64,000 nt of DNA, from assembly GCA_965644315.1 (NCBI GenBank), contig CBFFRQ010000002.1:1-64000 (forward strand), in the 5' to 3' direction. Source of the stretch: Caecitellus pseudoparvulus. Lineage: Eukaryota; Protista; Bigyra: Bicosoecida. Positions 20,564 to 64,000 of this stretch are shown here, piece by piece. How positions within the stretch are numbered: position 1 is the first letter of the stretch; every line of letters begins with the position of its first letter. A program made the translations under genes and the position numbers. The notes beneath the pieces were generated by a model that saw only the letters and a program-made list of their open reading frames with translations, was not told where the DNA came from and ran no database searches.

Positions 20564-23500
20564 CTACAAAGCTACACACAGCACCCCGCGGACATCCTCC
20601 ACGACACAGGAGGCGTCCTGTGCTGCATCACACAGGGCTCGGGCGCCATCCGACGTGATCCAGCCGCCCCACGTCCCAGCTCCGTTCTGGGCCCGCACGC
20701 TCACGAAGAGCGTGCCGCCAGACGGCCACGTGAAGCCATCTTCATCTTGGTCTGGCCCAGTCAGCAGCGCACTGGCTTCGAGGGAGTCGCCCACGAGCCT
20801 GCAAGGCATGAGGTCGTCCCGCCCGGCGTCAGAGCCGGTGCTGCCAATGCACCACTCGTACTGCACGATGCCTGACTCTGCATCAGCTGCTGGGGTCCAT
20901 GAGGCTTGGAACACTGCCCCAGGACTGCCCAGGATGCAGTCCGCGTCCACGTTGCCGCCGTCACGCACTTCCACTTCGTCGCTCCAGGCCGGCGCCGTGC
21001 CGTCCAACAACACGGGCTGCCCCAGCACGAGCTGCTGCGAGCCCGCACCATTGGCCACCTGGGCAACAGGGAAAAGACGGTCGCCATGGCCCCATGGCAC
21101 AGGCGGCACGGCGAGTGTGAGCGCGTTGGGGCTGGGGGCCAAGGCAAGCGCTGCGGGGGCGCTCAGTGGGTGGCCCGGGGCGCTGGGTGTGCAGGAGCAC
21201 AGGCCACCCTGCAGGGCGAGCACGGCGCCTGAGTCAACTGCTGCGCTTGACGCTTGGGATACGGCAGACAGAGTGCAGGACTCGTCCACCAGCCCTGAGC
21301 CAATGCGCAGCGGGTCCGAGCTCAGCTGCACTGGGCCTGAGCCGTTCCACTGGCCAGGCACAACGAGCACGGACAGGGCGGCGCTGGCCAGTCCTGACTG
21401 GGCATCTCCCAGACCCTCCACGCGCAGCACCAACCCCGCCTGCACAGACTCCACAGTCGTGAAGGATGCAGGCTTCAGATCAGGCATGGTCTGCACCGCG
21501 CAGGCGGCCGCCGCGGCCTCCGCCTGTGAGGAGCCGGGAGTTGGCAGCAGTGCGTGGCCGCCTCGTGGCATGACGATGCGTGGTGTTAAGGCAGGCGGTG
21601 TCACATCCAGCACGCCCAGAGGGGCAATGACTGCCGTGGACAGGCCTGCGAAGTTCGTGGCGACAGCTGTGAGCCACAGCGTGTCGCCGCCCTCCAGTGC
21701 GCTGGAGTTCAGGGTCACTTGGGCCAGGCGGCCGCTCTCCACCAGGTTTAGGTCTGTCCACGAGGCACTGGACCCCACAGCATCCCAGCTGCCCACTTCT
21801 CGCATGTGCGGCATGGCTTGAGACCCCAGAGCCGTGGCACCCACTGTGAGGGTGAGGGAGCTGAGGCCGGCACCAGCATCCGCCCAGTTCGCCAGGGACA
21901 GCTCCACGCGGCTCATGGGCACGATGGATGGCGGGTCACTGCCAGCCTGCGCCACCGCCTCTGCAAGCTGGCCAGCTGTGATATGGGCTGCACTGCCAGC
22001 AGGCAAAGCCGAGGCCTGCAGCGTGCGGGGCGCACAGGCGCTCGCGGCGAGAGCAGGCATGCGGAAGGTGCGGGTCCACGGCAAAGCTTCCTGCAGTACG
22101 GCGGCTGGTATGGAGGCGGCAGTGTTGGTGCTGCATGCTTCCGCATCTGGGAGCAGGGCCAGTATACCGGGCCGTGGGTGTGAGCGCACGAGGCGGACAG
22201 TGGGGGAGGACAGCTGCAGGAGCCTGCCGCCTGCCTTGCTCACCGCGACTTGAACTCGGAAGCCTTGTGCAGCTGCGAAGGCGGCATCCAGAGGCACGCT
22301 CTGCAGGAGTCCCTCCGAGGCGGAAGCCACCTGTAGCAGTTCGTGTGATGCCACGGATCCTTGGGCCGCCACTTCTTCTCCCGCGGGTGACACAGCGAGC
22401 AGCGTCCACGCCATGCCTTGCAGCGGCACAGACACAGCCGCAACCAGTGGCAGGCGGAAGGCAATGTCCCGTGAGCCACCCTGCACCCAGCGTTGCACTG
22501 GAGGGGCCCAGGTGGCACTGACGACCGGCACTGGGATGGACGGCGCGCCAGGCTGTGGGGTTTGGTCTCGCACACGTGCATCATCGCCGTCCACGACGAG
22601 CAGGGGCGACGTGTACACTGACTGCTGCCCGGCGCCGTTCGCTGCTCGCATGAGCAACACAGCCACGCGCCCAGCCAAGGCTGAGGCAGGCAGCGTCAAG
22701 AAGGTGGCATCCGCGCTGAGCTGCACGAAGTCAGCCTCGCCAGCAGCGAGCCATTGCGGGGAGGAGAAGCTTCCACCGGTGCACGAGCCATCCGAAAATG
22801 GGCCGTGGATGAGCGCAACTTCGTGCACGGCGATGCCACTGATGTCGTCCGTGGGCACTGGCAGGCGCAAGGACACTCCTGTGCTTGAATCCCCAACCAG
22901 GAGGTGACTCTGCAGCTGTGCTCCACACGACACGTTCGAGTCTTTGCTGGCCAGGTCAGGCGACAGCGCAGCAGCCACAACGTGGTCCATCCCACCCACT
23001 GCAGCCTCCGCAAGTGCCACAGCCTCGGTCGCCGAGCCCGCATGCAGCGAAGCCTTGCCGAACCAGGCACCATCCAGCATCGCCACAGCGCCGGACCAGG
23101 CTGGCGGAGACCACGGCGCATCCATGAACAGAGGCAGGGAAGCGCCCACAGCACGGCGGCCATCCTCAGTCTGCGCCTGCACGCTCACCACCACAGCCAT
23201 GCCGTGTTGCAGCTCCAGGCCTGCAAACGCAGCGGTGCCACGAGTCACGTACACGCCTGGACTGGGGTTGGAGGTGTTCCAAGTTGCTGCGTCCAGGGCA
23301 ATGCCTTCACCAAGTGACTCTGATGTGGCGCCTGCAATGTGGCCCAGCGTGGCGAATGCTGACTGCAGAGGCGAGCTGGAGGTGACAGTCCAAGTGAATC
23401 GCACGTGCGTCGCTTCAGCGCTGAAGCGCATGCTCTGCTGTGCAGCGTCCACAGCCTCCACGACAACCTCAGCTTCCTCCGCTGCCACCTGCACGACGCC

Positions 23501-26500: not shown

Positions 26501-29500
26501 CGCCGCCGTCCACTGCCAGCTGGCGCTGACGTTGTCCTTGTGGCTTTGGTACGGCGCATCCACGAACGTAGTGAGGGTGTTCCACACTGGGCCTGCCACT
26601 GGCAGGCTCGTGTCTACCATCACACCATCCGACTCCAGCAGGGCAGATGGGTTGCCGACGTTGTTCACGGCCCGGATCTGCAAGCAGTAGCGAAGGCCGC
26701 TGGTGAGGCCTAGGCCAGTCGCATGCAAGGTGGTCACTGTCGCCCCTGGCACATCGGTCCAGTCTCGCACGTCGCGGCTACCCACGTCGCCGTTGTCGCA
26801 CCAACGCACAGCATACTGGTACTTCGCCACGGCCCCCACATCTTCCACAAAGGCATCCCAGTTCCCGCGCATCTCGCTCGCTGAGGCAGTGAAGGCAGCC
26901 TCACCCGTCACGCCAGGCACGGCGTCTTGAACAGCCCCACCTGGAGCAGGCTCCGGAGCAGTGCCGTCAAACACCACGCCATCTGAGGCGACATCCACAA
27001 ACAGGCCATTGGACGCCACAGCACGGACCACGACGTAGTACGTCGTGCCATGGGCTGGCACGATGGCAGCGGGGTTCGTCTTGGCCGTCGTGTTGGAGCT
27101 CACGTACGTCAGCGGCAGCACATCCAGCGGATGGGCCGACAGATCAGGACCTGGTCCAGGCGCTGAGCTGGAGATGCCCCACAGGTATGACACAATGGAG
27201 GCCTGGCCTGCGTCGAAGCCGCCCCAGACAGCCTCCAGAACAGGCTGAGCATGCCCATCTTGGTCCGCGTCCAGGTCGCGTGTGGCGTCCACGTCGTTCA
27301 CGTACGCGGCGGCAGCTGATGGGCGGCTGGTCTCGATGTCAAGCGGCACGGGCTCAGACAGACCTGCGTTTCCTGCACGGTCCAAGCACCTGGCACGCAT
27401 GTGCACCTTGGTGGCATCGGGGAGTGGCGAGGCGAAGGTCACCGTGAACGTTTGGCGCAGCACCAGCAGGCCATGCAGGCTGAACCTGCTCACCTCTGAC
27501 TGCGCCACGGTGAAGGATGAGTGAGCAGTGGGGGACTCCTCAGTCCCAGCGGCCACTCGGCAGGCAGAGAAGCCCGCATCCGTGTCGGCGAAAGTGATAG
27601 CGACTCGCATGGATGTCATACTCGCCACGGACTGCACAGCGTGCTGGGTGGCGTTGAAGCTGTCTGGCTTGCCTAGCAAGGCGGGAATGCCATAGCCAGC
27701 CCAAGCGGACCCTGGCGCTGCCAGAACAAAGAGGGACACATCCGGCAAGGCTGTGTCCACGAGAATGCCATCAGACAGCACAGTCGTTTTCAGCCCAGCC
27801 GCATTCGTGGCTGTCACAGAAGCGTACACATACGTGCCACTGCGGACAGCGACGGGCACTGTGAACGTGTGTTCCCGCGCCAGGCCCACACTGATCGTGG
27901 CTGCGATGTTGTCCACCGGCCGCCCAAGCACCGAACCAAGGCCAACTTCGTACTTCACCAGCGGCGACACGTCTTCTGTGAACTCTGGCCAGTGCACTGT
28001 GAAGGTGGTCGTGCTGGAGGTGAAGTCCAGGTCGTTCGTGGCGCCGTCTCCTCCGATGTCAGCGGGTGTCAGCGAGCCAGCTTGTGGCCCGTCGCGAGGC
28101 TTCTGCAGCGTGGGCGGCGTGGCGTCAAAGATGACGCCATCTGAGCTCGAGACGCGGAACAACCCCGCTTTGTTTGTGGCCTTCATGTGCACGAAGTACT
28201 GCTGGCCGTGGGTCATGGTGTCCTGCGGCAGGCTGTGCACACCAAACGGCTCCACATCCCGCCATTGCCCCAGCGGCACGCCTGTGTCCAGAGGGTTGCA
28301 CGTGCTGGCGTCTGGCGTGGCGACTGTGCGGCAGAACTGGTACGCAAGGAGGCCACCTTCGGTGCTTTCGGCGTCCTGGAAGCCGTTCCACTGCCAGGAC
28401 GGCACGTTCACGCCGGTGTAGTCGATGTCTGCTGTGTCGTCCTGGATGTTGAACTGGTACGTTGCGATGTCCACCTCGCGCACACCGCCTCGAGGGCTCG
28501 CGGTGGGGGCGTCAGGAAGCAGCACGGGGGGCGTCACATCCACAGTGAAGGGCTGTGAGCACACCGCTGCTGCGTTGCCTTCCACTGTGCGTGTGTCCAG
28601 CACCCACTTGTACTGCACGCCCTGCGTCAGTGCCAGGGACCGAGGCATCTGCATGATGAGCGGATTGGGCTGGCCCAGGCGCTCAAAGCCCAGCGTTGGA
28701 GCCCGCTTGGCAACTTCAGTGCGCGCCCTCTGCACCACCAGCGGCGCCAGCTGCGTCACCCACACACTGCGAGGATTGGCTCGAGCTGGCAGCGTGTCTT
28801 GCAGCGCAGCACTGGCTGCCGTGACGGCGTGGACACAGGAGTACGTCGGCATGCGCACACCTGCCGCGGCAAGGCTGGTGTCCAGAGCCCACGTCACGCT
28901 GACGTAGTGTCCTGGAGGGCATTGCTGAGGCGGACGAGTGCACACAGCCCGTCGAGGTGTGGAGCAGTCCATGGCAGTCAGGCGAGGCGCAGCGGTGGCG
29001 CTGGCCTGCATGGCAGCACAGTCCAGATCGAGCACCGCGTTCGGGTCTGTCATCCAAGGCCAGCGTGAAGCTGCTTGGGCGGCGGTGCCGAGCTGGTGCG
29101 GGCTGAACTTGCTCACCCAAGTGCCCCGCTCCACGCGATCTGACAGCCCTGTCCAGCAAGGTGAGATGTCAGTTGGGCACAGCGCCGCGAGGGCATGCAG
29201 CACAGCCTGAGATGGCACGGGGAGCGCGACGCCTCCCCCGAGCGCACACTGCACGTCGGCGACGTCTCCTTCGGTCGTGGCAGCGCTGGTGAAGGCACAG
29301 GCCATCTCACCTGCGCTGAGAGTGACCAAGATGTGCCCAGCTGGACACCCGAACACAGGGGCCTCACACATGGCTGGGAAGCTTGCACTGACAGACGACT
29401 GGAAGTCCACAACGCCATCGACTGCGTGCAGCGTCATGCCTGCTGTGCTGGCTGAGTTGGCTGCGTTGGAGGCAGCAGTGGCGTCTCGCCATCGCACCAG

Positions 29501-32500
29501 CCAAGCTCCAGCCGGGGTATCCAGCGGAGCAAGGGGACCGATCGGGAACTGATGCAAAGCATGCCCGCCAGTGTCAGCCAGCCACGAAGAAGCTCCTGCA
29601 GGTTCAGACACCTGCCGTTGCAGCCCCAGCCAGCACTGTGCCCCTGCCTCTCCACATGCACGGGATGCGGCTGCCGTCTCCAGTGTGCTCAGCCCGATGC
29701 CAGCGAACGGCAGTCCGCCCACGCTCTCGCACCCTGCACGGGCGCCAGACAGGCTGACAGGTGAGGTAGTTGTTCCCAGGCACCTAGGCATGCCGTCTGC
29801 TCCAGGCATCAGGTGGAAGCCAGGGGGGCAGCTGCGCACGCCAGTTTCACACAGGAACGGCAAGGAGTCTCCACTTGGATGCACTTGCACGCCGACGTTC
29901 AGACTCGCCGTGTCAAAGCCCTCCATGCCTGACGCCAGGCCGAAGGAAGTCCCCGGTACGGCACTAGTCAAGTCAGCAGCATTTTGGAGCGGCAGCATGC
30001 TTGCCGTGTCACCAGGGCTCTGCGGCGTCAGCTGGCTGGCGCTCCACGTGCTCGGCGCCTGCACGCTCATGCCAAGCCAGCACGACATATCAGCGGCGAA
30101 ACAGCGCGAACTAACTGTCTCCCGCTTGACGTCATCGTGCAGCGCTGTGCTGGCCAACCAGCCCCCCTCTGCGGCACACGAAGCTTGAGCCGCTGCCCAA
30201 GACGCTGGACTGCTCACGTACTTGATGCAGGAAGGAAGCGTGCCATTCGCGCCGAGGACCAACTCATACCCGCTTGGGCACTGCAGCATCGTGCCAGTGG
30301 CATCTCCGTCAGTGTAGAAGCCGCTGCAGCTGGCAATGTCTGACGCGGTGGAGATGCGCTGCAGGCCCAGGCGGGCCGTCAAGCTGTCACAGCGCACATC
30401 GAAGTCTGCGATTTTCACCGCCATACCAGCATGCACTGTTGACGCGCCTCGCAGCTGAGTGGACAGCGCAGAATACGTCTTCTGTGGGTCGTGGGTCGTG
30501 TACAGGGAGGACACTGCGCCGAAGGCTACATAGGGGAACTGCAGCGGCTGTGCAGCCGAGTACCCTGGGCACGTTGCACGAGTCCCGTCACAAGTGGGTG
30601 CCAGGCGACACTCGGACACGCGCCCTTGGTTGCAGTGGTGGTCATCCTCCGGCTGATACCGCACCTCGTCACAGCCGCCGTCCCCATTGCAAGTGTACGA
30701 AACGTGGCAGTCCTGGGCGTCACACGTGTACGGCGTGCCTGTGCAAATGCCTGACACACACTGATCATCGTAGCTGCAGGCATCAGTGTCATCACATGCC
30801 AGGTCGTTGGGGCGGTTGCTCCAGCCAGCTGGGTCCTTGATCACGTCGCAGTACTGGCACTCGGGCTGGGCGGGGTTCACTTCCCCATGCGCGTACAGCG
30901 TGCCGCCAATGTCGCAGGCACACGTTTTCCCTCCACCTGGCAGCGACTTCACACCTCCTGTGTAGCCTGGCGCTAAGTTGCAGCCTCCCAGGCCGTCACA
31001 CACCTCGCAGTCTTGTGCTGGGTCGTCGGTCCACTCCTCCATGAGGCAGGTCTTGTACAGCTGGCCCTGGCACAGTCCGTTGGAAGTGCAGTTGTCCCGG
31101 AAGGTGCAGGCGAGATCGTCATTGCAGGCGGTGCCGACGCCCTTCTGGCTCCACATCATGAAGGCGCCAGGGCCTGCGGGGTCGCACCAGTAACACGAGG
31201 AGTGCACGTCTTCTGGGAACTCCCGCGGCTTGTCAGACAGGTACGGGTAGCACTGGCGCTCGCCGTAGAAGTCCAGGATGGAACAGCTGTCCTCCTCCAC
31301 ACACCGAGTGCAGCGGAAGCTGACATCCACTGCGCCTGCGATGCCAGGGGCACCAGCGTACGTGTCAGGCTGGGGCGTGGACACGGTCTGACCCATCTGC
31401 TCCAGCACAGGCGTGGGGTGGCCGTCCTCGGTCAGCATCCAGTCTGTCAGGTAGAAACCCGCGCCACCTCCTCCGCCTGTCATGGCTGTGGAGGTGCGGG
31501 CAGCGCCAGTGCCGCCGCCATAGAAGCCGTCCCCACCGCTAGGGACGTAGGAGGCGCATGTGGCGCCATTGCAATCTGTGCCATCATACGCCCCGCCTGC
31601 AATGCGGTCGCCGTCTTCGCCTTGGCCCAAGTTGCCTGTTGTGGGAGTGGTGGCAACTCCACCAATGCCTGGTCCGCCGCCCCAAGCACCTTCGCCGCCC
31701 GTCACAGCTGTGGCACCTGAGCCAATGGAAGGCGCAGTGCCGCCGAGAATACCGCCTCCTGATCCACCTGCAGAGCACTCTGCAGTGCCGTATGCGCCGC
31801 CTCCACCTCCACCAACGACTGCAATCTCATCCCTGCGCGTGGGATCCCACAGCGCCGTGCGGCCGCCTCCAGCTCGATTGATGCGACTTGCGCCTCCAGG
31901 AGCAATGGGGAAGCCGATCGTGTGACCCTTCGTGCCATTAGCTGAGAAGTACGAGTCTCCCAGTGGGTTTGGCGACACGCCATACCCCAGATTCACACCA
32001 CTCAGCGTCGTGGAGCTGGCGAACAGTGCTCCAGGCTTGCCGACTTCAAACGCCAGCTTGGTTGCCGGAAGAGTTTCCATGCGACCGTAGAAGAAGCCAC
32101 CTGGTCCACCCAAGCAGGTGCCAGGCGATGTAGGGGAGGGCAGTCCCACGTCCAGCGCTCCAGGCGAGCCACCTGCTCCATACAGGCGCACATCTGCCGC
32201 CAGGGCGCCTACAGGCGAGGTGACGGTGTGCACGCCTGGCTGGGCGATGCGATAGCGGGCCCCGAATGGGCACTGGAGCGCTTGTTGGGAGATGGTTTGG
32301 ATCATGACGTGTCCCCGCAGCAGCTTGGCACGGCCGCCTGTGGCGCTGCGGTGCACCTCTGTAGGGAAGGCGGGAATGTCTTCCCACCCGCCCAGCAGCT
32401 GTGCGAACTGGACTTGGGCGTCAGAGGCGAAGCTCGTGCCGCCTCCACCACCTCCGACAACGCTAGCCAGACCTTCCGCCCGAAAGCCCCCTTCTCCGCC

Positions 32501-35500
32501 AGCTGATCCAGCTCCGCCGCCCATGTGCCCGCCACCGCCCTGCCCTCCGCTGGTGCGCACGCGGAACTCCGTGCAACCTGGCACACCAGCTCGATTCCGA
32601 CCACCGCCCACCCCCCATGGGCACTTGTCCGCTGTGCGCTGGTCAGTGCCACGATAAATGCCGCCCGCACCAAAGCCAGCGTCTTGCAGGGAACCTGCGA
32701 GGTTCGACGTGGCCAGCGTGCCTCCCTGTCCACCATAGGCCACCAAGAAGTGCGAACTCGACTTGGACTGCAGGCCTGCCTCTCCGTCCCCTCCATCATG
32801 GGCACCGCCTGCTCCTCCCTTGCCTGTTCCACCACCTCCGCCTCCGCCTGCCACGAGCAGCTCAGACGTGTAAGAAATAGCCACGTCAGAACGCAGTCTA
32901 CGGCCATCAAGGACACCAGAGCGCTGTCCGCCCAAGCCAGATCCCTGCAGGTTTGTGTACGTGAACGCGCTGGACGTCTCCACCGCGAGAACAGCCTCGT
33001 TGGCGTGGTTCCATCCCATGCGGTGCCCACCCACTTCCACGACGAACTCGTCCCCGCCCTTGACGGCAATGTAGCCGGAGGCATATGCGCCTGCTCCGCC
33101 TGGCTGGGTGTGGATGAGGTGCGATCCACCTCCAGCACCTCGTGCCTTGATGAGGATAAAGTGCACTCCAGCCGGCACTGTGAAGACACAGGTGCTGGAA
33201 GGGGCGTGGAAGTTGTGCAGGGTTGGGTTGGTGCCGACCGTTTGTGCCGTTTGAAGATCACAGGGCGGGATATACTCGCAGATGAATGCCCGCCCAGTGT
33301 TCGCGTTGGACGTGGTGCGCAGGAACAGCCCAGCCGCGTCCATGAAAGCGTACCGTCCGCCGCTAAAGCCGGCCAGCGGCACGCCAGTGGTGGAGTCCAC
33401 AGCCCACAAGCTGCCTTCGCCATACCGCCCTCCATCGCTTGCCAGAGCGGCCGTGTTCACCCACAGTCCAGCTGCATCTGCCCCGTCCTCCCACTCGAAC
33501 TCCCCACTGCGCAGGTTGGCACGCACTCCCACCCATGCGCCGCTTCCAATACCGCTGACGCCAAAGACATGATGTGCCAGGGTCAGCTCCACTGGGTCGT
33601 GCGCGCTCCACAGCTGGGCACGGGGGTGCACAGCCTTGCAAGCAGAGCGGGAAGCGGAGAGGGAAGATGGCCCTGCCAAAAGTTGGAGACACGTGCCCGT
33701 GATGGGGGAGCGATACCAGCCTGGCGGACAGGTGCCCAGCATCTCACAGGCAGTGAAAGCCGGCGTGCTGCACGAGAGCCTTGACAGGGAGTTGGAAGTG
33801 TGGTCTGTGGTCCCGATGCAGCCGTCCCCGCTGCCTGAGATGTCTCCTAAGCCGAGGGAGTTGGAGTTGGACACACCCACAGAGAATGCTGCCACGGCAC
33901 CTGCTCCATCTCGCCAGTGCAACGTGCCGGCGCTGATGTAGCCACCTGTCCACACAGGGCCGCCCAGCCCCATGACGTGGTCTATGTGGGCGTTCCACCA
34001 CCTGCTCTCCAGATCGCTCCACACACGAGCAGGGGCTGCTTGGCGTGTGCTGCCAGCCGGCACAGCAGCTGCACAAGCGGCATCGATGTCTGCATGGTTG
34101 GCGACCGTGGTTGTGATCACCTTGATGCACTGTCCAGTGATGGGGCTGACCGTGTCGCCATCTGGGCAGTGCGGCGGTGGAGCGACACAAGCAAAGCCGC
34201 CATTTGCAAACAGCCCCTTCTCTGTGCAGTCCACTGAGTACAGCTTGCCGTTCTGGTACTTTGCACAGCTGCCAATGCCGAGGTCCGGGTGCGATGGCGC
34301 CCAAAGTACAGCCGGCACAGGTGTTCCAGCATCATCCAGCCACTCCCATCGAGTGCTCTGCACGTTGTACGCAGCTCCCACAGCAACACCTTGCCCAGCG
34401 CGAGGTGCCCCTGGCTTGAAGTCCTGCAGCACCACGTGCTCCAACCACGGCCAGCCCACTGTGCCGCCCCTCCAGTCTGCTGTGGGGTGGGCCAGCTCCC
34501 CGCCATCGCCCTGGCACTGGGAACGCAGGGATGCCCAGGAATCCAAGGACTTGGCGGGGGGCAGGACATCCAGGTGAATCCAGCACGTCAGCGTCGTGCC
34601 GTGTGGAGTCCAGCGAGCAGGACAACCGATTGGGCGATAGGCACAGGCTGTCGCAGTGCCAGGGGTGCTGCAGTAGGCAGAGTGCAGGTCAGATGATGGC
34701 TCCGTGCGGAGGCAAGGGTGGTCAGAAAACTTTCCATAGGTCCACCTGCCGCTCCCTGCATCTAGCATGTCATCCACATCGCCAGTTGCAGAGCCAGACA
34801 CCCACACCTGCTTGTTGCCCTGGGTCGCATCCTGCTCGGCGTTGAGCCAGAAGTGCCACTGGTTGTAGGGAGCTGGCATGCGGGGCTGCAGGAACTGGGT
34901 CTTGAACCACTGCAGCTCAGCGTACGAGTTGGGTGCAAACAGGGTGGCGCCAGGGTAGTGCTGGGCGCACTCCCGGGCCGACTCGTCCTTGGACTTGAAC
35001 TCGATCTTGTGTCCGATGTGGAAGCAAGCGCCAGAGTAGGGGGACTGGGCCTTGAATCCAGGCGGACAGTGGGCGGCGCCGTGGGCATCTTGGGCTGGCT
35101 GGGTGAAGGGCCGGGGTGTTACGGTGGGTGTTGGTGTCCGAGAAGGAGACGGGGTGCGACTTGGTGTCCGCGATGGCGTCGGAGTTCCTGTGAAGAGACA
35201 AGTGTCAGGTCCGTCGAGAAGGGTGTACGGGCGACTTCTTGCCAACTGCACGTACGAGTGGGGGTTGCAGACGGAACTGGCTTCATGCAGATGCCTTCAA
35301 AGGAGCTTGCACACCCAAAATCTGTGAGCTTCTCATTCCAGCTCGAGCCTGGGTTGCCTGATGCATAAGCAATGCACTTTGCTTCATCGCCAAAGGAGAA
35401 CGTCGTGTCAGCGGCCGAATCACAAAACATCCACCGGACCTTGCCAGGGCAACCATCCAAATCACTTGACAAGCCAAAGGGACCGTACCATTGCCTGTGG

Positions 35501-52000: not shown

Positions 52001-55000
52001 TTGCGGATGCGACCAAGGCTCGCCTGGTTGCAGACCTTAAAGCCGGTGCCACTGAGCGCCTTGGTGAAATTGCTGCCACCTTCAGTCCAGAGGCTGTATT
52101 CAACGTGTCGCGCTCTGAGCTAACCGATGCCGGCGTGGATGTGCTCGTGGAGGTGATCCTTTCTGGTGCTGTTAACGAGACGGCCCTCGCAGTGGCTGGT
52201 CTGACTTTGCCTGAAGGGCTGGTTCGTGTGTCCAGGGCCGCTCAGGGCATCTCCACCGCCCAAGCTGCAGTGGGCAGTGTCATTGCCGCGGTGCAAGGCG
52301 CCATGCAGGCTGCCCGAGCCGAGCTTGATGGCGGTATCGTGCCTGTGGCTCTGACGCCGCCTAGCGAGCTGCTTCAAACTGTGTTGGAAGATGAAGTAGT
52401 GTTGCGGGAAGCCCAGGCTGCGGCCATTGGCTTCGTCTCTGCCTTCAACGACTTGAAGGAAGCAAGTGAGGGCCTCCCAGTTGACTTCCTGTCGAACCTC
52501 ATGCCCACTGCCTCTCCAGCACAAGTTGCTGCCGCGAACAAGGCCTGGTCATCGCTCATGTCTGCCGCGCGGTATTTGCCAGGCGACCGTACTGTCGTTG
52601 CTGTCGCCAACGCGGCCGGTGCTTTGCACCAGCTACTTGGCGCCATTGAAGATGTGGCGGATGCAGCTGGGGATGTCATGGACGCTCTCCCCACTGGAGA
52701 GGGAGACTTGGCAGACCCCGCCGCCGTCGCCATCTCGTTGGCAAGCGCATTGGGCGCATTTGTTCGTGTGACTGGCTCCCGAGTGCAGGAGGTAGCAGGT
52801 ACTGCGCTGTCCATGTCAGGTACGTCTGACTTGGAGATCGAGTTGCAGATGTGCGTGCCTGGGCTGGAAGCTAGTAGTTTTGTGTCGAGCTCCACAGACT
52901 GTGACAACCTGGCAGGCCTCTGGCAGGAGGAAGTCATGCCAGCGCTGGCAGCTTTGGGCACCGCACCCAAGGATGCTCACGTTGCCACGCTGTCCAAGTT
53001 GGAGGGAATGCTGAATGTCACCAAGCGATACGTTGCTGCATCGAAGGCGGCATTGGGCAGCACGAAGCCACCATCACCGACTGCTGGGGACCTCATCCTC
53101 ATGAAACGTGCTGATGTTGCGGGGAAAGTTTCTGGCGTTATGCGGGTGATCATCATCCTGCAACGCATGAACCAGGGCCTGCCCATCGTGCGCATGGTTG
53201 GAACAGCGGCAGAAATCTTGTCTGAGCCGTTCAACCTGGGCGACTTCCAAGACCTCCTTTCCAAGCTGAACAGGCTGCTGGCCTCTGCCTCCCTCGGCTC
53301 TGAGGACGCCCTGGGGGCGCTGTCGGCATCCCAGATGGGCTGGGTACTTCGCCCTGTGGCTGCATTGAAGGCAAAGGCTGATGCCGCTGTCGCTGAGTTG
53401 CTTGCCGAGAGCGAAGAACTCTCAGCCTACTTCCCGGACGGCATTCAGCGCGGGTCTCTCGCCGAGTCCCTGCCAGTGTCTCTGCCCGAGGGTCTGGCCC
53501 TGTTGGTGGAGATGCGCGACGCTGCAGCTGCATTGGACTCCATCCTGAAGTCCATCGCTTCTGCCGCGCCGACATCTGTTCCTCTCAACTCGGCATGGAA
53601 TGTCTCAGAACTGGCATCGAACCTGGCAGCGAATGATGTTGCCAGTGTTTTCGGTGAGTTCCAAGACACCATCCCGTCGTTTGTGCTGGAGCAGCCTGTG
53701 CTGGGCGTTTGGTGGTTTGCAGTCAGCCTATCCAAGACCATCAGCAACGTTGAAGCTCTGGAGGCCATTCGTGACTCGTACGAGCCAGTTGGCGCAGTCC
53801 TGCTTGCCGTGGAAGACGTTGCAGCTCCGCTCACCAACCTTGGCATCCCTTCGCTGGACGGCATCACGTCAGCTGTGAAGGCCATCAGTCTTGGTGTGGA
53901 CGTCGCTGTCGCAGTGCGTGACACAGGTCTGGCTGTGTTCAGGCTCGCTTCAGACGTTGCGTCATTCGGCGCCGATGCACCCATGGCTCGCCTCTTCGGT
54001 GAAGCCGTGGACTCCATCAAAGTCACCATTGAGAAGATCCAAGTTGCTGCAAAGGCCATGTCTCTCAGCGCTCCAGCTGACGTGCTCACTGCCGTAGATG
54101 TGCCAGCTGAAGTGCAGGGCGTCGTGACCGACCTGCAAGCTGTGCTGTCTGGCACCACTTTCTCCGCCTCGAACCGACAGAAAGTGCAGCAAGTGGCAAC
54201 GGCTGCATCCACACTCATCACGACTCTGCGCACAGTGGCTGGACGCCCCCTTCACGATCTGACTGTGGCCAACTTGGACCAAGTTGCGAAGGATGCGACT
54301 GCCTTGCGCAAGGCCATAACATCTCTTGGGGACTTGCAGGTGCAGCTCCCTGGCGCACTGCCTGCAGCGCTCTCTCAGGTGCGCTCGGTGTCTCGAGTGC
54401 TGGCCAAGGCAGCGTCTGCACAGAGCACTGCGCTGTCTTTGATGAACACTCGAGCAGTGTCTGAGCTGATTTCTCAGGGTGGTGCCCTCTTCTCAATGTT
54501 CACGACGCTCACAGACAACTCCTTGACTGTCTCAGCTCGTATCAAGGCCGTCGTGGAGCAGCTCGGGGACATTGTCTTCTCTGTGTCGTCGGTGCACCAG
54601 GCGGCCTTGCTGCCTATGCTGCGCCCACTGCTCAAGGATGCTGATTCCTTGGCGGCCACCTTCAACCAGGTCACAGATGTTGCTGCTGTCCTTGTGGACA
54701 CCAACCTACCAAGCAGCGCCTTGGCTGCTGGGGGCTCTGAGGCCACGGCTGCGTGGGATGATGCCGCCAAGGCCGCGACTGCTCTCGAGGAGGATTTGTC
54801 CCAGTGGTTGGATTTCGACACCGGTCTGCCATCCATCCAGCTTGCGCAGGACAGCCTTGCTGACACTGGCCTGAGCGTGGTCCTGCACGCAGGCCGGCTC
54901 CGCGCAGCCCTTCTCAAGTTGCCCGAGCCAGCGCTCACGGCTTTGCAGGCGCACGGCCAGTCCATCAAGAAGCTTGCCCGTGAGAGCTTGATGGGCATCC

Positions 55001-58000
55001 TGCCAGGCGTTCCCGACAGCCTTGGTGTGCAGGTCGTGTCAGTCTTGTCCGATGTCTTCCGCGTCGTGAACGTGATGGATGAGTTGCTCACCATGGCGTC
55101 AGAGGGAGCTTCCCCAGTCGAGCTGGTGGTGCATGCGCTGCCCACCATGGAGTGGGCGCTGGAGCAAGCTGGGTTTAACATTGAAGAGCTGAAGGACAAG
55201 ATCAATCAAGCCGTCACAGACATGATCAACGGCATCATTCCGTACATTCCTAAGCCGGACCCGCTGGTGGCAGTCATGGACACCGTACTGAAGGTGGAGC
55301 CAAAGATGATCGCTGTCGCTGACACAATTGAGGGCGTTCTGGCCCCGGCAGAGACGTTCATGACAGGGCTTGTTGTGAAGATTGACGCCATTGACGCGAA
55401 GGTCACTACTGCCGTGCAGGAGGTGAACGCAACGATGTCCAAGTATGTGGGCATGGCTCGTCAGGTCATTGACTTCATGAAAAACTCTGACGAGCTTGTG
55501 CTGCTCATCCAGGAGGAGGTGCAGACTCGCTTGGCGAACGTCATTGATAAGGTTCAAGAGTTGGTGGAGGGCTACATTGAGGATCTGCGAGTTTTCCTGC
55601 GTGACATCGTTGACACCGGTGTGGAGGAGCTGAACCGACTGGTTGAGGCGGGCCTGGTGGTGCTGCGTGCTGCTGGCTCTCGGGCCATTCGCTACGTAAG
55701 CAACTTCACAATTGGTGCTGAGAACATGGAGAAGGCGAACGAAGTCATCAACGCCTACGCCAGCCTGAACGACGAGCTGTTCAATGATGCTGACCACGTG
55801 ATCGACACCGTCTTTGACTTGGGCAAGCTGGTTGTGTCCATCTCCAACGCAATTCCCGACGAAACGGGCGACCGCATGCGCACTGCAGGGCGTGCAGTTG
55901 TGTGGGTGGCTGAGCGGGCGTACGAAATCAACGACTTTGCCTTCCGCGCGAAGAAGAGCGCAGAAAAGATCAGGGATGCTGGAGGGGTGGTGGCGTTCCT
56001 GGAGGGTATCATGGATCAGCTGATCCAAAAGGCAGGGGATATTGCCAAGGGCTGGTCAGAGATGCTCCGCAAGGAGGGATACAAGTGGATGGATTACATT
56101 CCCGACCGACTGCTCAAGATTGTGGCAGCTGCCCGGAAGATGCTGGACCAGTTCATCGACGACCTCATGGCCAAGGCGCTGGAGTTTGTGCGTGAGCAAC
56201 TGAAGAAGGTGGAGTTTGTTGGCGAAGAAGCTGAGCGTCTGCTTGGGTATGTGGACTATGTGTACGCGTTCTTGGACAACCGGAAAGTCGTCTCGCAGCT
56301 CATGTCTGATGTGTCTGGCGAGCTCAACAATGCCCTCGCGGTGCCCCAGGCAATCCGCGGGGCCGTAGATGTTGGCAAGGGCCTGTTCAGGCAGGTGCGC
56401 GCAGCTCGGGATATGTTTGCCAACTTTAATCCTGCTACAGTCAAGATCGCCAAGCTTGACATTGGACTTGAGGACCTCGTGAGTCTCTTTGACAAGCAGA
56501 CGTGCACGTCTGTGGCTGTGTGCTTGAAGGATGTGTTGCAGCAGCGTGTCAGCGAGATCCTGCTGGAGGTGTTGCCGATTGGCGACGGCCTGCGCGCCGT
56601 GGCTGCGTTCCCAAGCCAGGTGAAGCAAGCGGGGGATGCGCTGGTTGCCTCCTCCAAGGCTGCTGTTGACGCCATGTCACGCACCCTGGACAGCTTGACA
56701 GCCACGATCAAGACCGTGCTGCCTGGGCGTCGACGTGCTCTGGCTGGCCCGCGCCGCCTTGGCACGATGCGCGACATCTTGGAGGCGCTCCCTCTGGACG
56801 AAGCGGAGGACTTCTCCAACACGCTCGTTACCTACACCGAGTTCGCCCGCAGCACGATTCGCACCATCCGGGAGAAGGCAAACCCCATTATCCAAGGCGC
56901 CCGCTCCGTTCTGACGACCATTCGGGACATGAACCCGTCCAAGGAGGCCGCCCGCCGCATCTTCGAGATGACCAGGGACCTGTTCGACCCCATCGGCTTC
57001 GTCAAGGAGCAGTTTGCGTACGTGCGTCGCGAAGTCTTCGAGCGCATCTACGCTGCGAAGAAGTGGGCTCGCGACCAGGGCCAGGCAGTGGCAGCCATTG
57101 CACGCGACGATTTTGTGGCGGCTGCTGAGTTCGCTCTGTCAGTTCTGGGAGAAGTGCGATGGATCATCGAGCAAGTGCGGCCCTACCGCGACCTGGCTGA
57201 ACATGTGGCTGATGAAATTCGGTACTACATCAACCTGGTGGGGCAGTACATCGGTCGCGGGACCACTCGACCCGACCAGCTGCGCCCCTACTGCGATCCC
57301 GAGGAGCAGCCTTGCCTGCACGTTGAGAGCCGGCGTGGGCCGATTTACGAAGGCATTCTGATCGGCTCCATGACGCACTTCTGGTACGAGAACTTCCCTC
57401 CTGCCTTTGGCTCTTGTCAAGCGTTTGGATTCCCTTGCCGCCATGATAAGTGGCGATTCACGGTCCCTGGCCTGTTTAACGATTGGCAGCCACGCGGAGT
57501 GGAGGCCATTGACTACCGCAACACCATCATCACCTACGTTGGTACGGGCGATAACGAGGGCAAAGCATCCTTGTTTGTTGTTATCGACGATCGCAACCGT
57601 GTCAAGCGCATCTTCCAGCTGGAGGAGGCGGATGGCACCCCATATGACGGCGGAGTGGGAGATGTGGCCATCGCAACGTACAGCCTGAACAAGGACAAGA
57701 TCATCTGGACGTGCAGCGACAAGGCAGACTGGGAAGCAGCAGATAAGGAAAAGCGCATCGTCCCAGCCGAAGCCCGTGACGGGCACATCATTGCCTTTGA
57801 CTACAATAATTTCATGCGCCAGCTGAACAGCGGGCCCACCGTGCAAACCCTGCGAGCGAAGCCGGGGTACAAGTTCTACGTTGACGTCAAGGCCAGCTCC
57901 CTTTTCATGGATGAGCGAGCCACCAGCGAGGACAGCCGCATTCTGTGGGTTGGTGAGACCTATGAGCCTGGTGACCCCGCGACACGCCCCAAGACGAAGA

Positions 58001-61000
58001 CCAAGGGTAAGCGAACTCGCGGCCGAGGCAACTCTCGCTCCGGCAAGCGCCCCCGCAAATCGCGCAAGACCAAGTCCAAGAAGACTGCCTTGACGCGCAC
58101 CAGTGACGAAGATGACACCAACCGTTTCACTTACACTCTGGATGTTTCCCCGCACCACAAGGTCTCGGGCCAGTACAGCTCCAGCTTCTGTCGCAAGGGA
58201 GCTCACGGCCAGTACTCCTTCGGCGCAAATGGCCCAACATCGGCCAGCCCAGATGAAGTTAACAACGCTTTCAAGAAGTGTCAGAAGGGCTGGGTGGCTG
58301 GATACTCCATCGACTCGTCCAACGGCAAGCCCCGAGCTGAGGTTTCAGGGTACAGGTACAAGCCAGATGGGGCACCATCATCCATGCCCCCTGGTGAGGA
58401 AGTGCTCATCCCGAACTTTGTAGTGCAAGCTGGCGCACGCATGAGGGGCTGGTTCACATTCAAGCGCCTTGGATTCCTGACTGGAGCTGTCAGCAGGTGC
58501 TCGTACGCACGAGGCTACCCCAACTGTCGCATCGAGTGGCACACACTGGAAGCCTCCGGCTATGGTGCAAACCTGCTTGGAACTCTTGACGGCCACGAAC
58601 TTTCAGCCGCCATCAATGCCTGGCAAGATAAGGGCAAGTGGGTGTTGGTTGAGGGCAAGGCTCCAGCTGCAACAAGTGCTGCAAACAAGGGCAGCGGGTC
58701 TCCGAAGAAGGGCTCTGGTGGCCGCAAGCCCAAGTCGAGCTCGAGCTCCAAGGCCGCGACCAAGTCAACCGGGCAGAATGACCAGAGCACGGGGACGCAA
58801 GCATACGTTATGCGGGCACCAGCTGGTATTGAGTCGATGACGCTGTACCAGGACGATCGCGTGACGTTCTGGATGGTGCTGTCCAGCGCCGGGACAAACT
58901 CTGTGAACGAGCAGCTGGCACGCATTTCGGGGTGGGTGGATGACTCCCTTTACAAGCTCACCCTTCCGGCAGTCAGGACGGTGAAGCCGCAAGTCGTGGA
59001 CAATGTGCTGTACTTTAAGGTGCGCAAGCATAAACCCCCCGTCATGCAGTACGTCGTGCGGCAGCGCTGCTTGATTCCCGGCCTGACCAAGAAGTTGTGT
59101 GACGAGCACAAGAAGGTCCCCAAGTACTCCCTGAACCGCCGCCTCTCTCAGCGTGGCTTGGCTCACGCTCGTGACGCAGATGTGGTTCTGCATCTGAACG
59201 CAGAAGGGCAACTTAAAGATGGCATCGACTTGCACACTTTGCAGGGTGTGGGAACAGCCGCGGCAACGTCAGCCCACCGCATGTTGATGCCCAGCAGCAC
59301 ATATGCAGATGCGCGGCACGCTTCGTCGGCTCATGGAGTGGTGCTGCAGGCAGCTGATGGCACTTTCATTCGAGTGCTACCTGCCCACCTGAATGACCCT
59401 GCGCTTGAGGAGCGCCTGTGGGAGGTGTCCCGTGACCTCCCCCACATTCACCATGTGGCGCATAAGTCTGCGCTGCAGAGGCTGGCCCGACCTGCCGCTG
59501 ACAAAGTGCCTTTTGGCGGTGTGCTGCATGGTGGTCAGTCATGGGCACCCTCAGCCGACGGCCACTTTGGCCATCATGACTCTGCTCTGCAGGTTCGGGG
59601 CGGTCGTGCTCTGCAGCAGGCCAAGGCAGACGACGAAGAGGAGTACAAGAACTGTCTGCAAGGCAGCTTCAAGTTGGGGACGTTCGACATTCCCTTTTAC
59701 CAGCTGAAGTTCCGCGTAGACGGTGTGCCGGACATTGGTCTGCGCATCGAACTGTTCGCTGGCATTCGTGTGGACATCTTCTTCGATGTGGCTTTTTGCC
59801 TGAAGGAACAGCTGATTGTCGCGACTCTTTCTCCCGAGCTGTACCCCGCAGTGGAGGCGAAGGGTGAGGTCAACGCTGGCATTCTCAGAGCTGGCGGGCG
59901 GTTGCTTGGTGTCCCCGCAAAGACTCGCCTCGTTCCGACCCTGCTGCTGGGCCTCACACCGGGTGGTGCCTTCCGCATTGGGCTGCGCATGGATGTCGGC
60001 ATCCAAGGCCCGTCCATCGAGGCCAGCGCCTTCTTTGATATCCGCATTTGCATAAAGATCAGAATAGACTGCGGCAAGTGGATCTGCTGGCCAGTCATCA
60101 ACATTATATGGTGTGGAGAGGTCGGCTTTACGTTCTTCAGGTACACTTCTCGCTGGCATGACAAGCACCTGTTCACCATCTCCAACAGGAGCCCCGACAC
60201 GTCTCCCCCAGAGACGGCAGGCGCCTTTGTGGACGCACTGCAGACTGATGCGCAGACAGTGCGTGTCACGTGGGGCGGATTCTACGACCCTGAGGCCTAT
60301 GTGCGCTTCTACTCTGTGGCGCTTGGAACACGGCCAGGGTCCGCTGACATTGGTTCGTGGTACAGAGATCGTGAACTGAGTGAACACGAGTTCCCAGATG
60401 TGCTATGCCCACCCGAAGGCACTCGTACATATGCCACGGTCGTGGCGGAGAACTCCGAAGGCTTGACCTCCACTGTGTACGAGCGCTTTGTGTGTGACTC
60501 CACTGGCCCTGAGGTGCTGGACCTGCAGATCTTCGACAACTACAAGCAGCGATGGGTGCTGTCTTCGGACTTTCAAATCCTCAACAACACCAGGAACTTG
60601 GACGCCCGCTTCAAGATCCGCGAGCCCTCAGCACACGCGAACATATCGCTGGTGAAGTTCAGCGTCGGCAGCGAGCCTGGCGACGAGGACGTGATGGACT
60701 TGGTGGACCTGGGTCAAGCCGACAAGCTGCGCGCCAAGTTTGGCGGGTACTACTACGCCGAGGCCGAGCGCATCGAGCTGAATCACGGCAACTACTACTA
60801 CTTCAACGTGGAAACCTTTAACACGTTGGGTCTGCGTGCCGTGTTCTCCTCCCACGCCATCTTCATTGACCACACTGGCAGCTATGCAACCCACATTCAC
60901 GAAGCTGGTGGGAAGAATGGATTTGCATACCGCAATGACGACGTCGTGTACTTTGGATCCAACCAGAACATGGCTGTGAAGTTTGACGCTTTCGAGGATG

Positions 61001-64000
61001 ATAACGGCATCGAAACTGATGTGTACTGGGTGAACCTAGTTGATGTGCGCACGAACAGGCGCCTGCTACCCCCTCGTCACCCAACCCGGCCCACCTTCCC
61101 GTCCCACATGTTCATTGGCGCAGCAAGGGAGTTCGGCATTCTCATGCCACTTGACCAGCTGTTAGTGGAGGGTAGGGAGTACCAGTGGAGCATCATTTCC
61201 CGCAACTCTGCGGGGACGCACCGGGAGTCGCGTTCAGACGGCTTCATCTGCGACCCAACGCGTGCCAGCGTCTTCAACATCCGTGAGATGAAGGTTGACC
61301 CCGACGTTGACTACAAAGAGATCGAAGCAAACCCCACTCGCACGGACGACAAGACCGCGCAGCCGATTCTGCTGCCTTCTTCGTACCGAGATGACGAGCT
61401 TGACTTTGTCTCTGAGTTGCCACTGCTCCACTTGCAGTGGCAGGCGTGGGATACCCTGTCTGGTCTGAGGCGCGTGCTTGTGGGGGTTGGGCCCACGCCG
61501 GGCAGCGACCTGTACATGAACTGGCAAGAGCTGCCGCATGCGAACCAACAGGAGGCTGTCTTCTACGACATCCCCCTGCTGCCTCACATGCCCGCCTTCA
61601 CGACGCTGCGCATCATGAACGAGGCCCGCGATGATCGTTGGGAGATCTCAGACGGGCTGGCTGTGGACATCACGCCACCGTACATTGACAGGCCATACCG
61701 CTTCTTCGACTGCGACACTGACACCTCAATTTGCTACATTTGGGGGGACATCATCGCCCAAGCTGACAACACAAGCATGATCTCGACGTGGATGAACGGC
61801 TTCTTTGACCCACACTCCTTTGTTGGCTTCTACGACGTCTTCCTGGGCACCAAGCCCTTCTCTGACGCTGATCAGCCAGGTTGTGCAGACTATGTCGGTT
61901 TCAAGCGTAATGACATTCCTCAGGACGTGTTGGATAAGGACAAGGTGCGCAACATCACCGTGAGGCTGCCCGGCACTGCAGCAGAATGCGCGACGGCTGA
62001 AGGAGCGCCGAGCTTCTACGACCTTATTGGCCCCATTCGCCTCTCACGCTTTACGTTCCGCTACAAGTGGCAGAACCTGAGCTTCCCCTTGGAGCACAAC
62101 ACGGAGTACTTCACCACCATTCGTGCCACGAACCTGGCAGGCTTGGAGTCATTCGCCAGCACGTCTGGCGTGAAGATTGACATTACGCCACCCTTGCCCA
62201 CGACGGTAGTGGACGGCAACCGCCAAGCTCCCAACTTCCCAAACCTGAACCCTGCTGTTGCGGACAACTTTGGTGACATGCAGTATCAACGTGGGGATGA
62301 AATTGTGTTTGCGTCTTGGATCCCTGTCGTGGACCTGGAGACGAAGGTCGTGCGAACACGGGTGTGGGCGGAAGACGCCAACGGCACGCGTGTCAGTGAT
62401 GTTGGACTGCTGGCGCCCAGTGGCATCCCTGAAGAGGGCCTGGCGTACGCTACCCTTGGAACACTGTCTGGCACGAAGCTGCAGCACGGCCACACATACT
62501 ACATGGTCGTGGAAGGCGAGAACCAAGCCAAGCTACGCAGCAGCAGCGTGTCAGATGGCGTGTTTGTAGACACGACGCCTGTGGACATCCCTTGGGTGGT
62601 GCTGGCCACGAACGACTCTGTTGCCAGCGCCATCACATCGAACGAAGTCACCCTCGGCTTGCAGTGGCGTGCCCTGGAGCCAGACTCCGAGCTGTTCACG
62701 TGCAGGTACACGCTGGGCACTTTCCCGCGAGGCGATGACATTGTGGACGAGACCCTGGTGTTCCCGTGGCAGTCTTTGGCGCCTGCCTCTGTCGAGTCCC
62801 GCGTGTCTGGGCCGCAATACCGCACACCTCCCGCAACACGAGATGGCGGCCTTGGCGACCAGGCCGGGCAGACAGTTGGCGACGCGATGAACTCTTACGA
62901 CTGGAACCGACCCGTGGAGCAGGCAGTTTCGCACTGGATCACGATGCCTGCCAGCGACATCGTGGACAGTGCAACTGTGTATGGGCGTGTGCGCTGTGAC
63001 AACCGCGCTGGTGCAATTACGTTCAAGTCTGCCGAGAACACGGTGGTCGTTGATAAGACCGACCCTATTGCAGGGCTGGTGTGGGACGGCATTCCTGGCT
63101 CGCTCGACATGCAGTTCCAGTCCATCCGCAAGATCATTTTCGCCACGTGGCTGCACTGGGCTGACTATGGCACTGGGATTCAAGACTTCGTCGGTTGCGT
63201 GAAGAGCACGCGGGACGGCCCCTGCGACATGTCGGCGGAGATTTCCTTCGGCACAGCTACAAGCGGCGTGTTCTCCTTCCAAGACAACCCTCTTCCAGGT
63301 CACGAGGACTACTTCGTGCAGATCACGGCTGTTGACGGTGTTGGTCACACCGCGACTGTGGTGTCGGACGGCATTTACATCGACCACACGGGGCCTTCCG
63401 ACGGCTTCGGCACGTACACAGCCCATGGTTTGGTGGGTGAGTACCCTGAAGGCTTCGAAGCACGCTTCACAGGACGCCAGGGCCGCATGACGTTCAACTG
63501 GGGTGGATTTGCCGACAACCAGACTGGCATCTTGCGGTACGATGTGGGCGTGGGCACTGCTCCGAACGAGACAGATGTCATGCAATTCCAGAGGGGTGCT
63601 CTGGCCACGCAAGGTGCAGCCCAAGGTGTTGCTCTGACGCACGGCCAAGCATACTACGGCATCATTCGTGCGGTGAACACCATTGGCCTGCATCACGTTG
63701 TCGCCACCGACCCCATCGTGTACGATGAAACGGCGCCGCTGTGCGAGGTTTGGGACGGGCCCATCCGCGGGGTTGATGCAGACGTGACACCTCAGTTCGT
63801 GCCCACCATCCAGTGGAAAGTATCGGACCCCGAGTCGGGCGTCACAGCCATCCGATGGGGTGTCGGGCGGGTGAAGGGCTCGGACGACCGGATTCCATGG
63901 CAGACAGTGCCCGCAGCTGACTTGCAGGCGCTCTCTGATGCCTTCTTCCTGTACACGCAGGACGCTTGGCCAACCGGGGAGACGTTCTACTTGACTGTGC
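37020..64000 (+). CDS. Giant (>8,900 aa, runs off the window) secreted protein: lipovitellin/large-lipid-transfer-like N-terminus, very long amphipathic helical region, propeller-like and beta-sheet regions, FN3-like repeats; exons 37020-37086, 37158-37545, 37635->64000
   Basis: Signal peptide MALKAFDKPALGLVLLCLAAVY|GCAAA. Introns 37087-37157 and 37546-37634 are GT-AG and phase-consistent. Frame +1 reads as coding wherever sampled from 37636 to 64000. The ORF track lists no closed frame +1 ORF anywhere in this 26 kb, as expected for one unterminated ORF. Confidence 0.88.
60190..64000 (+). repeat. Array of >=10 FN3-like coding repeats, same family as in the divergent minus-strand giant
   Basis: Boundary motifs DTSPP (~60196), DSTGP, DHTG, DPTR, DITPP, DITPP, DTTP, DKTDP, DHTGP and DETAP (~63724). 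Internal motifs WGGFYDPE, WGGFADNQTGILRYDVGVGT.P...DV and L.HG..YY...A.N.AGL. Confidence 0.8.

Follow-up and report, generated by a model that had tools for sequence, protein, structure and literature searches.

A divergently transcribed pair of giant, putatively extracellular FN3-array genes in the marine protist Caecitellus pseudoparvulus

Two giant genes, here called A (minus strand) and B (plus strand), lie head to head in the first 64 kb (64,000 nucleotides, hereafter the window) of the 101.8-kb contig C2 (CBFFRQ010000002.1) of the Caecitellus pseudoparvulus assembly GCA_965644315.1 (30.6 Mb in 215 contigs). All available data indicate that they are genuine, expressed genes of giant extracellular proteins of this marine and probably heterotrophic protist, apparently transcribed outward from one short promoter region, and we infer, with a probability of roughly 0.45, that their products are co-regulated components of an outer adhesive or recognition coat; the two proteins may, in addition, function jointly or come into contact with one another. 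In such a coat B would form a stalk and arm of great length that is tethered to the membrane, and A would be released nearby as a soluble, multivalent binding protein.

An open-frame scan of the window yields a stop-free frame of 4,910 codons on the minus strand (20567-35296), belonging to A, and one of 8,827 codons on the plus strand (37519-63999), belonging to B and running past the window end. The first ATGs preceding hydrophobic signal-like segments are at 36065 (minus strand, A) and 37020 (plus strand, B), and the ATG-to-ATG spacer (36066-37019) measures exactly 954 bp. Frames and start codons agree with a preliminary description of this DNA, made from its letters alone, in which two giant genes were said to diverge from a spacer of this length. 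Following the contig beyond the window, B was found to end 14 kb farther on, at C2:78042, with a giant exon of 13,507 codons and a whole coding sequence of 13,620 amino acids (aa), so that the size given in that description stands for A (~5,100 aa) and is surpassed in the case of B (>8,900 aa). With this length, B is apparently one of the largest protist proteins on record.

Transcription from a shared region and retention of the paired layout

Both genes are transcribed. One public run contains 44% of the sampled words of the segment 34001-40000, small shares of which are also present in five marine metatranscriptomes, each from a different study. The locus was compared with the contigs of four RNA runs; these assembled contigs prove splicing and presence of the transcripts, their ends being limits for the 5' ends rather than mapped start sites, and expression levels cannot be ranked from them. 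Four studies contribute marine metatranscriptomes in which the 5' regions of the two genes and their splicing are found, both genes being represented in run X1. The structure of the locus that emerges from RNA and open frames is the following:

36923..37085, plus strand: exon 1 of gene B, with 5' untranslated region (UTR), ATG at 37020 and signal peptide; RNA contigs of X1, X3 and X4
37086-37156, plus strand: intron 1 of gene B, 71 nt, GT..AG; joint in X1 and X3
37157..37545, plus strand: exon 2 of gene B; GT..AG joints on both sides in X1
37546-37634, plus strand: intron 2 of gene B, 89 nt, GT..AG; joint in X1
37635..64000 and on to C2:78042, plus strand: giant exon of gene B; RNA joint and open frame
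36452..36922, no strand: shared divergent promoter region, taken as the stretch left between the farthest-reaching 5' RNA contigs of the two genes
36279..36396, minus strand: 118-nt intron of gene A within its 5' UTR, GT..AG; joint 36278/36397 in X1, the shorter flank being 55 letters
35297..36065, minus strand: 5' coding exons of gene A, with ATG at 36065, signal-like segment and a first lectin-like domain spread over at least two frames
20564..35296, minus strand: giant exon of gene A, 4,910-codon frame with the stop at 20564-20566

The RNA contigs of B begin at ~36923/36935; exon 1, which starts at or before 36923, contains a single ATG, at 37020, and the spliced frame, with a hydrophobic signal segment at its start, is open across both introns for the entire 13,620 codons. 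Between 37.7 and 40 kb, 20 of the 28 RNA variants are located at third codon positions, a distribution that fits purifying selection on gene B. As to gene A, its upstream UTR exon extends to at least 36451 and an RNA contig covers 36031-36278. Between 36065 and ~35160 a lectin-like domain is broken into two halves that are read in different frames, which implies the existence of coding introns; enumeration of GT..AG models for these introns gave thousands of open solutions, none of them unique. The acceptor of the giant exon is probably near 35160; the similarity of A to its near-identical paralogs begins at 35125-35159. Small 5' exons followed by one huge exon, as had been read from the sequence for both genes, are hence proven by RNA for B and, as regards coding introns, implied for A by the split domain.

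The outermost RNA 5' ends, ~36451 for A and 36923 for B, are at most ~470 bp apart, which bears out the earlier proposal of divergent transcription from a short shared region. With 5' ends on opposite strands and less than 1 kb from one another, the distance by which bidirectional promoters are defined, A and B resemble bidirectional-promoter pairs; they differ from the documented pairs of this kind in that no conserved promoter element was found between the paralogous pairs described below.

Searches of the genome with the glycine-rich region of A and with the head of B returned 12 A-like and 7 B-like loci, respectively. Head-to-head pairs with an A-like gene on the minus and a B-like gene on the plus strand are present not only on C2 but also on contigs C66 (~356-357 kb) and C34 (~176-179 kb), so that the paired arrangement noticed in the window recurs at two deeply diverged paralogous loci. 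The three pairs keep their layout though protein identity between them goes down to 25-43%. When the intergenic DNA of C2, C34 and C66 was compared, no conserved DNA or peptide was detected; having nothing in common, these regions indicate that the pairs are old. In a maximum-likelihood tree the paired B genes of all three loci cluster together (99/99), separate from the unpaired genes on C36, C57 and C31, and in the A tree three lineages (C2+C86, C34+C27 and C66+C56) each consist of one paired gene and one unpaired offshoot. The simplest history compatible with these trees would be that one ancestral pair was duplicated twice as a unit, single-gene copies being made subsequently.

Outside this species, on a metagenome contig from another organism (L007, 51% G+C), a B-like gene, a member of the other B clade, lies head to head with a giant gene on the minus strand whose product has 37% identity over 216 aa to the cysteine-rich module of A. 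Being a single contig, it would lend partial support to an old linkage of the two families. Another metagenome contig with such a pair, L006, does not count as independent, being the C66 locus of the same species (97-98.5% DNA identity over most of its length, 91% in the intergenic part, by trees and blastn). A related-locus search with a three-row B alignment gave nothing beyond the contig already known.

Because divergent transcription from a short region is combined with the existence of three old pairs, co-regulation of A and B appears likely, and a functional link between them plausible.

Within the A family, five copies are 98-99% identical in protein over the glycine-rich region, the other A-like loci being 38-48% identical. 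Where the giant exon begins, six A copies have a DNA identity of ~92%, and they diverge upstream of ~35160; on C37, C44 and C140 the resemblance to the C2 DNA is lost near 35125-35159, and other neighbours lie upstream. The intact near-identical copies are on C174, C37, C140, C146 and C44 (98-100% protein identity over the glycine-rich and cysteine-rich parts), and C45 carries a further copy with broken frames. The copy on C86 shares 48% identity with gene A over the glycine-rich part and is nearly identical to it over the last 137 residues (L038, L050), a mosaic pattern that suggests gene conversion. As regards the B family, C34 contains two almost identical inverted B-like genes (112-141 kb, minus strand, and 179-215 kb, plus strand) that enclose the A-like gene; of the two, the one on the plus strand alone faces it.

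Architecture of the two proteins

Protein searches were made with single exons or pieces of A and B as queries. Gene A would encode a secreted protein consisting of a signal-like segment, eight lectin-like domains, two glycine-rich domains, a cysteine-rich module, ~17-19 FN3 (fibronectin type III) domains and a C-terminus with three cysteines. Its giant exon is composed, from the N-terminal side, of the following parts:

33227..35089, minus strand: first lectin-like cluster, four degenerate C-type lectin-like domains (aa 70-690); Lectin_C
31307..33229, minus strand: two ALK/LTK-like glycine-rich domains (aa 690-1330); PF12810 below cut-off
30497..31309, minus strand: cysteine-rich module (aa 1330-1600), more strongly conserved across the A family than any other part
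28922..30304, minus strand: second lectin-like cluster, three domains (aa 1665-2125); piece scan
20636..28918, minus strand: FN3 array, 17 significant copies plus two weak ones; repeat profile and Pfam fn3
~24497-24889, minus strand: ephrin-receptor/TNFR-like cysteine module inside the FN3 array; Ephrin_rec_like, 21.7 bits, below cut-off

The lectin and glycine-rich domains that had been assigned to the head of A are matched by Pfam models to different extents. Lectin_C (PF00059) scores 57.3 bits over the whole protein, above its cut-off of 22.6, single domains reaching 16-21 bits and the best stretch being aa 2013-2120; in all, A has eight degenerate lectin-like domains in two clusters. On the other hand, the match of ALK_LTK_GRD (PF12810) stays just under the cut-off of 24.5, the whole protein scoring 22.5 bits and a single domain 20.7. 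Iterative profiles built from one lectin-like and one glycine-rich domain did not recruit the diverged sister copies. Furthermore, in a motif scan neither EPN/QPD nor WND was present in any lectin-like domain, the only QPD of A being situated in the second glycine-rich domain. Lacking a canonical sugar-binding motif, these domains do not imply that A binds sugars, and the glycan recognition once attributed to the protein is not supported.

The cysteine-rich module has 56-60% identity between ancient paralogs, and its matches in the genome are all in A-like frames with the exception of two weak ones on C64 (208569-208775 and 221290-221496), in frames of ~3,945 aa that are 41% identical over 70 aa to part of the module. 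A hydropathy scan revealed no transmembrane-like segment in A. The last 30 residues, with three cysteines and a final C-[VF]-A-L, are kept together with the stop in the paralogs on C44, C37, C140, C86 and C34, even in one whose identity in other parts is only 42%, which indicates that the gene ends there without an anchor. The final C-[VF]-A-L of the family (window 20567-20660) looks CaaX-like, though the protein appears to be secreted.

Gene B would encode, in this order, a signal peptide, a HEAT-repeat head, a six-cysteine element, a small sheet, a spacer, a propeller, a long-strand sheet, ~30 FN3 domains, PKD domains, a transmembrane helix and a tail. In the window its parts are:

38398..40080, plus strand: HEAT-repeat alpha-solenoid head (exon aa 294-854); AlphaFold2 model, pLDDT ~85-95
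40081..40548, plus strand: six-cysteine helical element and five-strand beta-sheet; invariant positions in the alignment, strands 892-969 with pLDDT ~60-75
40549..57330, plus strand: spacer of ~5,600 aa, non-repetitive, rich in Ala, Leu, Val and Ser; composition
57331..58983, plus strand: beta-propeller with long disordered basic loops; predicted model and VIA-align
59656..60078, plus strand: sheet of amphipathic strands of very great length, immediately N-terminal to the FN3 array; model strands 841-980, pLDDT ~80-89
60232..64000, plus strand: start of the FN3 array, ~30 copies continuing to C2:~74,680; PKD, transmembrane helix and tail lie beyond the window

An exhaustive HMMER search with the B head recovered 42 relatives; none has a name, almost all are metagenomic, and several are 4,000-6,600 aa long. 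The AlphaFold2 model, built from an alignment of 33 relatives, consists of a HEAT-type solenoid (255-815), the six-cysteine element, the five-strand sheet and a long helix. An N-terminal beta-barrel was not predicted, residues 1-254 being disordered in the model (pLDDT ~30), a weak result in view of the shallow alignment. Against the PDB, the family profile matches designed alphaRep/HEAT proteins with an E-value of 6e-33 and MTP with only 2e-3; Foldseek places SF3B1, importins and CAND1 at the top and MTP at rank 17, and in VIA-align MTP (Z 13.6, rmsd 5.0, 279 residues) stands level with designed armadillo proteins (13.3-13.6). The atlas matches obtained with the ESM protein language model are bacterial HEAT proteins, some clusters of which are labelled Vitellogenin_N. 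At E <= 0.01 the Pfam Vitellogenin_N model (PF01347) does not match B itself; 16 of the 33 relatives touch it, and they do so only at profile positions ~479-564 of 590, i.e. at its HEAT-like end. Since bacterial HEAT clusters carry the same label and only the HEAT-like end is matched, profiles and model alike identify the head as a HEAT solenoid and the lipid-transfer label as a cross-hit. The lipovitellin-like module seen in this region by the preliminary description is, accordingly, not distinguishable from generic HEAT/ARM proteins, and the role of lipid carrier proposed for B fails with respect to the sequence, beta-barrel and fold match of the large lipid transfer proteins (LLTPs).

The spacer is acidic and free of internal repeats, with a proline every ~25 aa and 33 cysteines mostly in close pairs; the language model found no usable atlas match for its core segment. 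From its composition it is probably helical, the modelled parts being its two ends, and in so far the helical rod of the earlier account is retained; the spacing of the prolines argues against a single continuous coiled coil. In relatives of ~4,000 aa (P0028, P0030, P0031) head and distal modules are the same and the spacer has only ~900 aa, as opposed to ~5,600 in B; spacer length hence varies within the B family.

The distal modules were modelled on aa 6540-7600 with an alignment of 13 rows (mean pLDDT 55). VIA-align compares the propeller with five-bladed GH43 and phage receptor-binding proteins (Z 16.4, rmsd 3.9-4.1, 265-272 residues). The sheet that precedes the FN3 array, whose strands of 22-24 residues are kept in relatives, has MTP (6i7s, E 2.5e-3) as its top Foldseek match; the two sheets of B lie 6,400 residues apart.

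Beyond the window, the C-terminal part of B contains PKD domains scoring above cut-off (66.6 bits with K319L-like_PKD, among the PF22352 / PF18911 PKD models, and 60.9 bits with PKD_4) and a single transmembrane-like segment (exon aa 13389-13418, mean hydropathy 2.65) followed by a short acidic tail. With a signal-like N-terminus on the RNA-supported exon 1 and one C-terminal transmembrane helix, B is predicted to be a type I membrane protein. Of the two proteins formerly described as secreted, A remains so, without anchor, whereas B ends in a transmembrane helix with a tail in the cytoplasm. Near aa 12,555, downstream of the FN3 array and ahead of the PKD domains, the motif C-H-L-T-Q-F-S-V-F (L004:4656-5438, corresponding to C2:74656-75438) resembles a GPS cleavage site; Pfam gave no GPS/GAIN match around it in a 261-aa piece, even at E <= 0.1. 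Some 600 residues of B (aa 11,480-12,050; L004:1716-3908, corresponding to C2:71716-73908) are rich in Ala, Ser, Gly and Thr and have no family match.

What the two proteins have in common is one repeat family, arranged in both as tandem arrays of units of roughly 90-100 aa. A single 92-position profile recognizes 17 significant copies (and two more weak ones) in A and ~30 in B; its PDB matches, with E-values from 4e-21 to 1e-5, are to FN3 domains in titin, in contactins and in fibronectin, and Pfam fn3 (PF00041) scores 38.3 bits in A, the cut-off being 25. The FN3-like repeats previously ascribed to both genes are therefore true FN3 arrays by profile. In a tree of 42 copies those of A and B are intermixed on long branches, from which it follows that the arrays are old; they bear no trace of recent exchange between A and B.

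Competing explanations

The idea that A and B are co-regulated constituents of an outer coat preserves one element of the preliminary description, namely the partnership, which is favored by the shared promoter region and by the retained layout, and abandons lipid binding, glycan recognition and co-assembly through the repeats. Several findings weigh against it. The FN3 profile matches at least 150 copies genome-wide, in more than 20 other giant open frames, so that possession of the same repeat is no argument for co-assembly of A and B; with the intermixed tree in addition, assembly through the shared repeats did not survive the check for repeat specificity. The lectin-like domains of A are without canonical sugar-binding motifs. 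Three of the ~12 A-like and three of the 7 B-like loci are paired, most members of both families being unpaired and either adjoining ordinary genes or standing in tandem with other giants, and the five near-identical A copies have no B-like N-terminal module on their contigs. The search for a conserved divergent pair elsewhere, to which the L007 contig gives a partly positive answer, gives a negative one for the short-rod relatives of B on AT-richer contigs, where no A-like neighbour is present within 7-10 kb, some contigs of short-rod relatives having no upstream sequence from which a neighbour could be read. Finally, whole-segment duplication could explain the three pairs without any selection on linkage.

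This last point is central to an alternative that we consider possible and take seriously, according to which A and B would be neighbours by descent, i.e. independent members of two families whose layout was copied by ancient duplication and whose partnership would not go beyond a possibly shared promoter. The large size of the two families with their many unpaired members, the A-only duplicates (C86, C27 and C56) branching off each pair lineage, the recent B-only inverted duplicate on C34 and the spread of the FN3 repeat over more than 20 giant frames are all what such a history would produce. It accounts less well for the fact that three pairs have kept their layout at 25-43% protein identity, with fully diverged intergenic DNA, and for the occurrence of the arrangement in another organism and another B clade on L007.

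The remaining explanations concern the nature of B. In the model originally proposed, B would be a lipid carrier of the vitellogenin/apoB/MTP kind and A its glycan-recognizing partner in a lipid-scavenging or prey-capture particle. Contacts of 16 of the 33 head relatives with Vitellogenin_N, the presence of MTP among the fold matches of both the head (Z 13.6) and the long-strand sheet (Foldseek rank 1, E 2.5e-3) and the amphipathic sheets on both sides of the spacer speak in its favor; B itself, however, has no Vitellogenin_N match, its relatives match the HEAT-like end only, bacterial HEAT clusters display the same cross-hit, residues 1-254 are modelled as disordered with no barrel, MTP is level with designed armadillo proteins, B is membrane-anchored and the lectin-like domains of A are devoid of EPN/QPD and WND, all of which renders this model very improbable. 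Very unlikely, too, is the bolder proposal that the B family represents a new class of extracellular machines tethered to the membrane, in which an LLTP-related HEAT solenoid and amphipathic sheets would be split by a helical insertion of 0.9-5.6 thousand residues, each B having a cognate A docking via its cysteine-rich module and the three pairs being co-evolving specificities for prey or particles. To a third proposal we give the least credence of all: B as a fold-back fibre, an ejectile or tethering filament, in which the spacer would form an antiparallel hairpin joining the N-terminal and the distal sheets. The mirror-like order of sheet, charged proline-poor segments and alanine-rich core and the variation of the spacer among relatives (~0.9 to 5.6 thousand residues) with both flanking modules kept are in line with such a fibre, but the spacer core has a proline every ~25 residues and neither heptad nor sequence repeats.

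Comparison with known systems and the remainder of the window

All parts of A and B are of known domain types and, on present evidence, do not constitute a new kind of system. The literature search yielded no description of giant proteins of this sort, and a search for homologues of the A head and of the B head among giant candidates, limited by its length window and word index, found none. Usherin is a giant modular FN3-array membrane protein of animals. Like proteins of this type, B starts with a signal peptide and an N-terminal head of its own, has a stalk of tens of FN3 domains, and ends with one transmembrane segment and a short tail; instead of a laminin/EGF head, it has the HEAT solenoid, the spacer of ~5,600 aa, the propeller and the long-strand sheet, and no sequence relationship emerged outside the FN3 domains, no search aimed at usherin having been made.

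Polycystin-1 and the sea-urchin REJ-type proteins combine lectin-like and PKD domains with a GPS and a membrane anchor. A and B share with them lectin-like and PKD domains, membrane anchorage and, near aa 12,555 of B, a GPS-like motif; unlike in those proteins, lectin-like and PKD domains are distributed over two proteins, there is no Pfam GPS/GAIN or REJ match, and one transmembrane helix is present instead of eleven. The resemblance of B to the LLTPs (vitellogenin, apoB, MTP) consists in an alpha-solenoid followed by an amphipathic sheet, MTP being a weak fold match; in contrast to them B has no beta-barrel and no Pfam match, is membrane-tethered and is ten times larger.

The architecture of the B family is not in Pfam. 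The occurrence of A and B transcripts in marine metatranscriptomes would make the two proteins part of the surface at which a planktonic protist, to all appearance a widespread one, meets prey, particles or viruses. A genome search for light-harvesting proteins returned none, its controls being blank as well. In Cafeteria burkhardae, genes for cell adhesion and lectin domains are reported to be up in stationary phase (PMC7852580). A two-gene unit kept through ancient duplications would offer a tractable test of whether giant surface proteins act as cognate pairs.

The G+C content of the giant genes (window 20000-64000) is 58-65%, that of the ordinary genes upstream 66-71%, with 70-71% at 12000-18000. 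These upstream genes (window 1-20300) include those of a WD40 protein (222-1781, minus strand), an AMP-binding enzyme (1785-3611, minus strand), a Gar1-like protein (8669-9664, plus strand) and a PhyH-like dioxygenase (18928-20232, plus strand); three long open frames without family match are found at 11037-17777. A frame of the endonuclease/exonuclease/phosphatase family (5586-6938, plus strand), with a weak match to the endonuclease-reverse-transcriptase type, may be the remnant of a retroelement.

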